A stretch of 64,000 nucleotides of DNA from NCBI RefSeq assembly GCF_033153115.1, contig NW_026889751.1, positions 17,918,001 through 17,982,000 of the forward strand. Direction: 5' to 3'. The stretch's first letter is position 1; each line of letters opens with the position of its first letter. Positions 43,458-45,626 of this stretch are shown here, piece by piece. The stretch is from Saccostrea echinata. Taxonomy: Eukaryota. Both the position numbers and the translations under genes were made by a program. The notes beneath the pieces were generated by a model. The model saw nothing but the letters and a program-made list of their open reading frames with translations, had not been told where the DNA came from and made no database searches.

Positions 43458-45626
43458 TGTTACGGTGTAAAATACGACTTTTCGGACTAATTAGAAATTA
43501 CTGTGTAAATTAACTTTTCGGACTATGTGTAAATTGTTATAAAAACTTTTCGTATATTTCGGCAAATGTGATAAATTCTATAAATTCCGCACAGCTTTAA
43601 TCCTACCTGAGGCAGTCTGACATGGACAGTTAATCTCCTAATTGACTTCTGTTTATATTTATTGTCACTTAATCTTTCATCTTCTTTAATTCTATTATAT
43701 ACATGCCGCTAAAATGTCACCAGTCGCTCAATAATTGTTTGATACTTGATTTCTTTATACTTTCTTGTTAATCCCTTTATTTTGTCGTATCTTTATTCAG
43801 TATGTAGGTTTTGTTGTTAAAAATTATAGTCAGTTGGAATCAGACGTTCGGTGCTGATACATTCCAAACTCATGTAAAAGTATATTCTATGCTGATTCTA
43901 TATAAAAGTACTAGAACTATAACGCGTGTTGGCTTATTGGAGGTTTTATGAATCTGGGTTCAACAATAAGAGGAAAACTCACGGTTGGCCCAGAATTAGA
44001 ATTGGACGGACAAGTTCATCCCGTAAAACTTGGTGTGAGAAACCTAAGGGTAACGACACCCGGGGCTGCTACATATATTTTGTAGTAGTCAGATCCTGGA
44101 CCTCTACAAGAGCCAAACAGCGAGTTTCCCCAGATTTTGACAGTGCTGATACAGATGAAGCAGACGTACACGTATTAGGACCAGCCATGGAATATTCTTT
44201 CCGACCGCAGTGGAGACAGAAGAAGTTCAACTTCCCTTCGTGTCAGCATCCAGTGTGCGGAAGGTGTGGAAACGTACACCCTAACGTTTTATGTTTCGCG
44301 TTTAACCAGAAGTGCTACAGATGTCAAAGAATTGGACATTATTCTAGGATGTGCTTCACGCAGATTAAAGAATCAAAGCCAAAAAGTAAGGGCAAAGGAC
44401 CTGTTACTAGCAGGAAAAAGACGCGAGACGTGAAACGACTGTGCAAGTATCTCGAAAATAAACGAATTCTGCGAGAATTGCCATTCAGTTCTCTTCGGGA
44501 CAGTCAGTTTCGTTCAATATGTGATAATTCGTGTGTTCTACGAACTGAGCTGAAAAATCTTAAAATTCAAATATGCAATGCAAATAAAGAGAAAAGGAGT
44601 TTGACGGCCGAATTAACAAAAGCCGAATCTGAAATCAAAAAACTTCAAAATCAAAATATGGTTATGAAAAAGAAGATGCAAGAACAATCTAACAATTCTA
44701 ATGATAACATCTATCGTGAGAAAATTCGCAAACTGGAAGACGACGCGCACGGTGACAGAGTGATTATGGACTTAATGCAGAGGAAATTGAATGAGATCGG
44801 AAAGGAACATAATCAGTATGTAATGCAAATTCAGGCAGAAGCTGAGAAAACAACCAAACAAGTAAGGGAAGAAAACAACGTCCTGCTACAGACAATCCGA
44901 ATATTGGAAGATGAAAAGGATCATTTGCTCGCCTTGTTTGTGGAAAATAAACAAAGATATCAACCATGGAGACGTCAAGGAAGACCAAGAAGGGGCCAGT
45001 TTCATTGAAAGAACATTCAAAACACGAGGACGTGTTTTACGCGAAGGCGGAGCATGTGTTACGGTGTAAAATACGACTTTCGGACTAATTATAAATTACT
45101 GTGTAAATTAACTTTTCGGACTATGTGTAAATTGTTATAAAAACTTTTCGTATATTTCGGCAAATGTGATAAATTCTATAAATTCCGCACAGCTTTAATC
45201 CTACCTGAGGCAGTCTGACATGGACAGTTAATCTCCTAATTGACTTCTGTTTATATTTATTGTCACTTAATCTTTCATCTTCTTTAATTCTATTATATAC
45301 ATGCCGCTAAAATGTCACCAGTCGCTCAATAATTGTTTGATACTTGATTTCTTTATACTTTCTTGTTAATCCCTTTATTTTGTCGTATCTTTATTCAGTA
45401 TGTAGGTTTTGTTGTTAAAAATTATAGTCAGTTGGAATCAGACGTTCGGTGCTGATACATTCCAAACTCATGTAAAAGTATATTCTATGCTGATTCTATA
45501 TAAAAGTACTAGAACTATAACGCGTGTTGGCTTATTGGAGGTTTTATGAATCTGGGTTCAACAATAAGAGGAAAACTCACGGTTGGCCCAGAATTAGAAT
45601 TGGACGGACAAGTTCATCCCGTAAAA
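43458..45626 (+). mobile_element. Young 2.17-kb non-autonomous LTR retrotransposon (TR-GAG/TRIM-like) nested in the outer element
   Basis: LTRs 43458-44028 and 45057-45626 differ by one substitution and one 1-bp indel; TSD CAAG (43454-43457, 45627-45630); PBS-like TGGTGTGAGAA right after the 5' LTR; purine-rich GCGAAGGCGGAG before the 3' LTR. Confidence 0.95.
44187..45008 (+). CDS. 273-aa double CCHC zinc-knuckle (nucleocapsid-like) plus coiled-coil protein of the nested LTR element
   Basis: ATG in strong Kozak context GCCATGG; CGRCGNVHPNVLC and CYRCQRIGHYSRMC knuckles, basic linker, ~140 aa heptad-rich E/K/Q/L region, R-rich tail. The track's 43926 start is a GTG inside the LTR. Confidence 0.85.
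   Translation: MEYSFRPQWRQKKFNFPSCQHPVCGRCGNVHPNVLCFAFNQKCYRCQRIGHYSRMCFTQIKESKPKSKGKGPVTSRKKTRDVKRLCKYLENKRILRELPFSSLRDSQFRSICDNSCVLRTELKNLKIQICNANKEKRSLTAELTKAESEIKKLQNQNMVMKKKMQEQSNNSNDNIYREKIRKLEDDAHGDRVIMDLMQRKLNEIGKEHNQYVMQIQAEAEKTTKQVREENNVLLQTIRILEDEKDHLLALFVENKQRYQPWRRQGRPRRGQFH

Follow-up and report, generated by a model that had tools for sequence, protein, structure and literature searches.

The 64,000-nt stretch of Saccostrea echinata DNA analyzed here (contig NW_026889751.1; referred to in the following as the window) carries a compact element bounded by long terminal repeats (LTRs) at positions 43458–45627 on the (+) strand, 2170 bp in all. Its anatomy was worked out by direct reading of positions 43300–45800, combined with repeat finding and BLASTN between the two LTRs. 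The 5′ LTR (43458–44029, +), located by both of the latter methods, is 572 bp long and begins with TGTTACGG; the 3′ LTR (45057–45627, +), located by BLASTN, is 571 bp. Between them lies an interior of 1027 bp (44030–45056), 822 nt of which (80%) are taken up by a single open reading frame (ORF) of 273 amino acids plus a stop codon (44187–45008, +), recognized from the ORF listing, Pfam and its homologs. A leader of 157 nt (44030–44186, +) separates the 5′ LTR from the ATG, and 48 nt separate the stop codon from the 3′ LTR. Direct reading also revealed a TGG-initiated sequence resembling a primer-binding site (PBS), TGGTGTGAGAAACC (44031–44044, +), 1–3 nt past the 5′ LTR, and a short polypurine tract (PPT), GAAGGCGGAG (45043–45052, +), 4 nt 5′ of the 3′ LTR. 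No further copy of the element was found within the window.

BLASTN found just two differences between the LTRs, a G/T substitution and a 1-nt indel within a T run. Because there is only one substitution in 571 aligned LTR bases, we infer that the insertion is young, well under 1 million years old at an assumed, unmeasured rate of 1–5e-9 substitutions/site/year. The pentamer ACAAG precedes the element (43453–43457, +) and recurs at 45626–45630 (+), where it overlaps the final 2 nt of LTR identity. With these 2 nt shared, the target-site duplication (TSD) is 3, 4 or 5 bp long, a match for which the chance expectation is about 1/64 to 1/1024. The duplication reflects an integrase-type insertion. 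The element has TG at its 5′ end, and its start, TGTTACGG, and its end, CCGTAAAAC(A), form an imperfect inverted terminus. An earlier, sequence-only reading of this DNA had described LTRs of ~570 bp with two differences, a TSD, and an interior of ~1.03 kb nearly filled by one ORF, and the measurements agree with it on each of these points.

Some smaller features of the LTRs and leader were also recorded. The 5′ LTR contains a candidate TATA box, TATATAAAAG (43899–43908), and a weak and equally tentative AATAAG (43965–43970). At the U3 end of the 5′ LTR (about 43460–43560), and likewise in the 3′ LTR, BLAST self-hits revealed three direct sub-repeats, imperfect but sharing the core ACTTTTCG(G). 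These may be regulatory repeats; Tandem Repeats Finder called no tandem array in the LTRs, the sub-repeats included. Folding of the leader RNA gave no significant structure (z = -0.84).

Terminal repeats alone might be the pseudo-LTRs of some other class of element, for instance of a Penelope-like tandem, a retrozyme, or a DIRS/Ngaro or Troyka element. Penelope-like elements are very abundant in bivalves, and LTR-like repeats and upstream zinc-knuckle ORFs are possible in them (PMC8557442). However, an Rfam search over 43300–45800 returned no family, hammerhead ribozyme included, either at the gathering threshold or at E ≤ 1, and the repeats are accompanied by a TSD, a TG start, a TGG beside the 5′ repeat and a purine tract beside the 3′ repeat. 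Penelope-like elements and retrozymes were rejected on the lack of a hammerhead in the terminal repeats and of an ORF for a GIY-YIG domain or reverse transcriptase (RT). Troyka elements have CG...CG termini and a 3-bp TSD (PMC12440569); such termini are absent here, and this class was rejected as well, as the element starts with TG. Membership in any of these classes is thus extremely improbable.

The ORF starts with an ATG in a gccATGg context and encodes a protein of unusual layout. Close to the N-terminus are two nucleocapsid-like CCHC zinc knuckles (44256–44354, +), identified by Pfam, by profile search and in the AlphaFold2 model: knuckle 1 has the form Cx2Cx3Hx4C (residues 24–36) and knuckle 2 the form Cx2Cx4Hx4C (residues 43–56). 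The Pfam zf-CCHC family matched knuckle 2 (residues 41–57) above threshold at 5e-05, and the remaining Pfam matches were sub-threshold coiled-coil families. The knuckles are followed by a basic linker and a conserved block, KS.KKK.RD..R...Y..RK...RELPF, made up of a helix (residues 75–97) and a loop (together 44358–44498, +), as seen from the alignment, the charge count and the model. The linker and block (residues 58–104) carry a net charge of +12. Next comes a coiled-coil region (residues 105–257; 44499–44957, +), near-neutral over residues 105–255, which contain no Pro and two Gly, and finally a disordered Arg-rich tail (44958–45005, +), with a net charge of +6 over residues 256–273 and the motif WRRQGRPRRGQFH in the C-terminus. 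The tail is defined by the alignment, the charge and the model; its counterparts in homologs end in an RGRGRF-like sequence.

The reading frame is also open for 87 codons 5′ of the ATG (43926–44186, +), into the 5′ LTR. This extension is probably due to chance, because it lacks an in-frame ATG and no conserved N-terminal extension before the ATG was present among the homologs. Two out-of-frame upstream ATGs (43949 and 44153) lie within the putative leader.

A structure was predicted with AlphaFold2 from a 60-sequence alignment of the protein family described below (A3). The model, with a mean predicted local distance difference test (pLDDT) score of 84.8, consists of the knuckles (pLDDT 87–93), the linker and conserved block (87–97) and long helices, with values above 90 in the coiled coil. 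Helices span residues 75–97, 105–112, 115–170 and 173–257, with a polar, N/S-rich hinge near residues 165–178, whereas the N-terminus, residues 62–68 and the tail are disordered. An earlier model from eight sequences was consistent with this one. When both models were compared with the PDB by Foldseek, nothing was found at E < 3, and no retroviral capsid domain was matched.

Comparison of the family profile with PDB sequences divided the protein in the same way. Residues ~20–79 matched nucleocapsid (NC) proteins: equine infectious anemia virus (EIAV) NC p11 (2bl6, 1.8e-7), a Gag polyprotein (6t61, 1.4e-6), and the NCs of human immunodeficiency virus (HIV) and Rous sarcoma virus (RSV). Residues ~105–257 matched generic coiled coils, including tropomyosin, myosin, GCN4 chimeras and, at E 0.0046, the ORF1 protein (ORF1p) of LINE-1 (long interspersed nuclear element 1; 6fia). 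Occupancy of the heptad a and d positions in residues 105–255 was above that of 994 out of 1000 shuffles. Hydrophobicity averaged over the 60 sequences gave a spectral peak at 3.5 residues in both 115–170 and 173–257, at 13–15 times the mean power, and the conserved hydrophobic positions of the family coiled coil are spaced 3/4/7. Because the shuffles, the 3.5-residue periodicity and the generic coiled-coil matches agree, and no capsid fold was found, the C-terminal two thirds of the protein is a canonical heptad coiled coil, and neither a diverged capsid nor an out-of-frame pol. Likewise, no signal for a capsid, protease, RT, RNase H or integrase was detected in the ORF by sequence, profile or predicted fold. 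All the parts that had been read from the letters, namely an intact 273-residue ORF in a strong Kozak context, an N-terminal knuckle pair, a basic linker, a coiled coil of ~140 residues and the WRRQGRPRRGQFH tail, with neither capsid nor pol, were thus recovered in the present analysis.

With such a product, the element was rejected as an autonomous LTR retrotransposon of the Gypsy, BEL or Copia type, since its sole ORF consists of zf-CCHC and a coiled coil without protease (PR), RT, RNase H or integrase (IN). The ORF was also rejected as a LINE ORF1p: it gave no match to the RNA-recognition motif (RRM) or C-terminal domain (CTD) of such proteins, it carries its knuckles at the N-terminus, and a PPT and an LTR come after it where a LINE would have ORF2.

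The protein belongs to a large family. A single-sequence search for homologs, which yielded 16, was followed by a profile search of 1.84 billion representatives. The closest homolog, at 95% identity, is S. echinata LOC133186974, which is annotated from an internal Met; Magallana-like homologs are 54–83% identical, and those from Mytilus coruscus and Pinctada imbricata 30–38%. The profile search returned 3038 matches at E ≤ 1e-3; tightening the cutoff to 1e-10 left 179 clusters, and to 1e-30 left 36. All matches covering most of the profile were stand-alone proteins of 240–376 residues. Longer proteins among the matches were either aligned through their knuckles only, which are repeated in most of them, or were gag–PR proteins matched at their NC, as in P0130, where Retrotrans_gag is followed by knuckles and a protease. 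The named members are all from pteriomorph bivalves: S. echinata, S. cucullata, Magallana gigas, Mytilus coruscus, Mytilus galloprovincialis and Pinctada imbricata.

In an alignment of eight sequences (A1), M1, RPQWR (6–10), all knuckle ligands, D81, R84, Y88, K92, RELPF (96–100) and R104 were invariant, and most members finished with the RGRGRF-like tail. In the 60-sequence alignment, C27, R80, D81, R84 and P99 remained invariant, while K73, S74 and F100 were conserved in at least 90%. Distant members follow the same plan, with knuckles near residues 20–40, then KS.KKK.RD..R, then ..PF, a coiled coil and a tail rich in R, G, Y and Q, and the family motifs are held at ~20–30% identity. Pfam found zf-CCHC in 32 of the 60 aligned members, its other matches being scattered coiled-coil families; the capsid, protease, RT, RNase H and integrase families were matched in none of the 60. 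Apart from the knuckle, the family has no Pfam family, and literature searches found no description of a knuckle/coiled-coil family of this kind. Because the knuckle-first layout is conserved at full length across the family, it is no accident of deletion in this copy. To that extent, the suggestion that the element is more than a simple deletion derivative is supported: a large bivalve family, multi-copy at the protein level, has kept the knuckle-first coiled-coil protein as its full-length design down to ~20–30% identity.

Beyond the bivalves, a scan of metagenome contigs with the family alignment found no relatives, and a scan of IMG/VR gave one match, at the level of the knuckles only, which was uninformative. 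One metagenome contig, L002, matched a 20-nt string from the PBS, but this was rejected as a chance match, since nothing beyond that string is shared and the GC content of the contig is 50%.

Two kinds of irregular family entry were noticed. Many entries, including P0001, P0005 and the latter's 141-member cluster, begin at an internal Met corresponding to residue 55, are 219–220 residues long and lack both knuckles. Truncation of contigs or gene models at the knuckles could explain them, as could a genuine shorter isoform. In two others, P0224 (S. cucullata LOC134267175, 562 residues) and P0008 (M. gigas K1QAC4), the gene model joins a family ORF to host sequence of no relation to it, which in P0224 includes epidermal growth factor (EGF)-type Pfam domains. 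These fusions are probably annotation chimeras resulting from insertions in or near genes.

The multi-copy status of the family was assessed at the protein level, in clusters formed at 90% identity. In Pinctada, four near-identical copies are spread over three chromosomes; the 15 members of an ENA cluster come from 15 contigs, and a Magallana-like cluster is made up of 141 members. In a quick maximum-likelihood tree, the sequences split into deep lineages, at least four for Mytilus and three for Pinctada, and the tips within each are very short. To judge from these sequences, the pattern is that of a mobile family with recent bursts, unlike that of a host gene.

This pattern bears on the possibility that the protein serves the host or opposes other elements, as a domesticated or selfish NC-like decoy which, by binding a helper's Gag or RNA, would restrict it in a dominant-negative manner, with the LTRs as a mere vehicle. 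Long-term conservation of a protein without any replication enzyme would fit such a role, and there is precedent in Fv1 and enJS56A1, which are Gag-derived restriction factors. However, a family that is multi-copy, multi-lineage and recently amplified behaves as a mobile element selected for its own transposition, unlike a single-locus host gene, and the present copy lies between near-identical LTRs with a TSD. We therefore regard a host or decoy function as quite improbable.

A stronger competitor is an internally deleted derivative. Here, the copy would descend from an unseen autonomous LTR lineage whose true first ORF ("Gag") is the capsid-less knuckle/coiled-coil protein. The natural start and stop are conserved family-wide, as they would be for a separate gag ORF, and the knuckle pair resembles the NC of ordinary gag–PR proteins, P0130 among them. 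On the other hand, the strong full-length matches do not exceed 376 residues and come without PR, RT or IN, even though fused gag–pol models are common in gene prediction; many family members are found on contigs just 1.1–2.6 kb long, which are weakly consistent with a short unit; and neither the leader nor the stretch after the stop codon leaves space for pol remnants in this copy. An origin by internal deletion is consequently unlikely, but it is the alternative of most consequence: should Repbase already contain a Gypsy or BEL lineage that has this family as its first ORF, what remains would be an ordinary deleted copy.

Taken together, the evidence favors, with reasonable though far from complete confidence, a young, gag-only (TR-GAG-like), non-autonomous LTR retrotransposon in which an RNA chaperone built from a nucleocapsid and a coiled coil, without a capsid, serves as the "gag", and to which RT and integrase are supplied in trans. 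The element has kept the parts needed in cis, namely the LTRs, PBS-like site, PPT and terminal inverted bases, and has no genes for RT, RNase H, integrase, protease or capsid. In the mechanism we propose, the LTR promoter would drive synthesis of an RNA of ~1.7 kb, from which the protein would be translated starting at the strong-context ATG. Its coiled coil is predicted to mediate oligomerization, and the knuckles and basic segments may coat nucleic acid, preferably the element's own RNA. With a design comparable to that of LINE-1 ORF1p, the protein would chaperone its own transcript and serve as an adaptor for packaging it, much as a nucleocapsid does. Because the element encodes no enzyme, RT, RNase H and integrase would have to come in trans; they would be provided, together with a capsid shell, if any, by an autonomous LTR element of the same genome.

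Several points weigh against this interpretation. We infer RNA binding, oligomerization and trans-mobilization from motifs. No LTR-type pol that might serve as helper was found within the window. Since gag and pol are often separate ORFs, the absence of gag–pol fusions from the protein databases still permits an autonomous relative whose first ORF is the same. The LTR and TSD anatomy comes from this one copy, while the family is known from proteins. At the 3′ terminus, the LTR copies agree only as far as ...AAAAC, and a CA end is possible only if there is no TSD. The PPT, at 10 purine-rich nt, is short and modest. The sequence-only reading had proposed a Leu-type PBS together with a PPT; a TGG-initiated PBS-like site and a purine tract are indeed present, but the PBS-like site matches neither of the two tRNA-like genes in the window.

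More tentatively, a broader proposal can be made, which we consider possible but hold at less than even weight by some distance: in oysters, mussels and pearl oysters alike, a common and long-lived LTR lineage may have swapped its capsid-forming Gag for a LINE-ORF1p-like protein with a double knuckle and a coiled coil. The element would then be a protein-coding satellite that builds its own ribonucleoprotein and borrows only RT and integrase, and perhaps a shell. If true, this would represent convergence in packaging between LTR and non-LTR elements, and would offer a model for helper–satellite co-evolution in animals.

The element is surrounded by a varied set of other features. A tRNA-Thr(CGU)-like gene (42589–42661, +) was detected ~0.8 kb 5′ of the element by Rfam (tRNA, 36.7 bits) and ARAGORN. 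LTRs with tRNA-Thr-like sequences have been reported for the Helenus TRIMs of bivalves (PMC10886601). The surroundings of this gene yielded neither a second copy nor an LTR pair, which leaves a genuine tRNA gene, a solo LTR and the head of a short interspersed nuclear element (SINE) as possibilities. At ~0.8 kb, it is too distant to have been the integration target, and was rejected as such. The second tRNA-like gene, a tRNA-Ser(AGA) with a long variable arm (53140–53231, +), was found by ARAGORN and falls below the Rfam gathering score. A tandem array at 41776–42168, made up of four to five units of a 75–76-bp repeat at 69–97% identity, resembles the dispersed satellite-like arrays of oysters.

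Two divergent polypeptide GalNAc-transferase-like genes also appear to be present, with exons at 8152–8436 and 17313–17804 on the (-) strand and at 25730–26263, 29162–29443, 35802–36293 and 37639–37914 on the (+) strand. Their motifs were recognized by eye, and Pfam Glycos_transf_2 matched 29162–29443 at 1.7e-10. The element lies either downstream of the plus-strand gene or in a late intron of it. About 550 bp 3′ of the element is a GC-richer block (46172–47293, 41–46% GC) with open frames of 374 residues (-) and 234 residues (+), neither of which had a Pfam match; a low-complexity Pro/Ser/Thr-rich protein may have one of its exons here. Two further frames, at 3543–3968 (-) and 50129–50500 (-), resemble remnants of non-LTR retrotransposons, with a C-terminal Cys/His-rich motif and a ...YIDDVL... 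stretch, respectively, and gave nothing in Pfam at E ≤ 0.01.

Non-autonomous LTR elements that keep gag have been formally described in plants as TR-GAG, with an ordinary capsid gag. The S. echinata element suggests an animal counterpart whose sole protein is capsid-less and joins a retroviral-type nucleocapsid to a coiled coil, the architecture of the LINE-1 RNA chaperone. In bivalves of commercial importance, the family is intact as well as large and diverse. If our interpretation is correct, it would be a tractable system for studying minimal retroelement coding, the origin of cis-preference in LTR elements and the co-evolution of satellites and helpers.

Among known systems, LINE-1 ORF1p, HAL1 and Drosophila HeT-A offer the nearest parallel in protein design. 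HAL1 and HeT-A are ORF1-only or gag-only non-LTR parasites that borrow their RT. What they and LINE-1 ORF1p have in common with the present protein is the combination of a coiled-coil oligomerizer with a basic nucleic-acid chaperone (PMC5940361, PMC6581046), and the coiled coil of LINE-1 ORF1p likewise evolves fast while its heptads are kept (PMC5940361). However, LINE-1 belongs to the non-LTR class and has the reverse domain order, whereas the present protein has no RRM or CTD, and its similarity to ORF1p is that of a generic coiled coil. The N-terminal part, in turn, resembles the NC of retroviruses and LTR retrotransposons in its tandem CCHC knuckles and basic flank, in line with its profile matches to the EIAV, HIV and RSV NCs and to the NC of gag–PR proteins. 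In Gag, however, NC is C-terminal to the capsid and is released by the protease, while here it is N-terminal and there is neither capsid nor protease.

With respect to the element as a whole, the TRIM/Helenus elements of pteriomorph bivalves are tiny LTR elements with a PBS and PPT; the animal Helenus elements are reported to have 4-bp TSDs and to be mobilized in trans by Gypsy, and their host range (Ostreida, Pterioida, Mytilida and others) is the same (PMC10886601). They differ in being shorter than 1 kb, in encoding no protein and in carrying a tRNA-like sequence in the LTR; the present element has a conserved protein, and its LTRs are without such a sequence. Of the kinds described so far, the plant TR-GAG comes nearest (PMC4350172), and the element shares its structure: it is under 4 kb, has LTRs, a PBS-like site, a PPT and a TSD, contains a single gag-related ORF without PR, RT or IN, comes from a family that is multi-copy at the protein level and is presumed to be mobilized in trans. 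It departs from TR-GAG in its host, a bivalve instead of a plant, and in lacking the capsid domain: in the TR-GAG ORF, the zinc finger follows a capsid domain of the UBN2 or Retrotrans_gag type, whereas in the oyster element the knuckles come first and the coiled coil follows.

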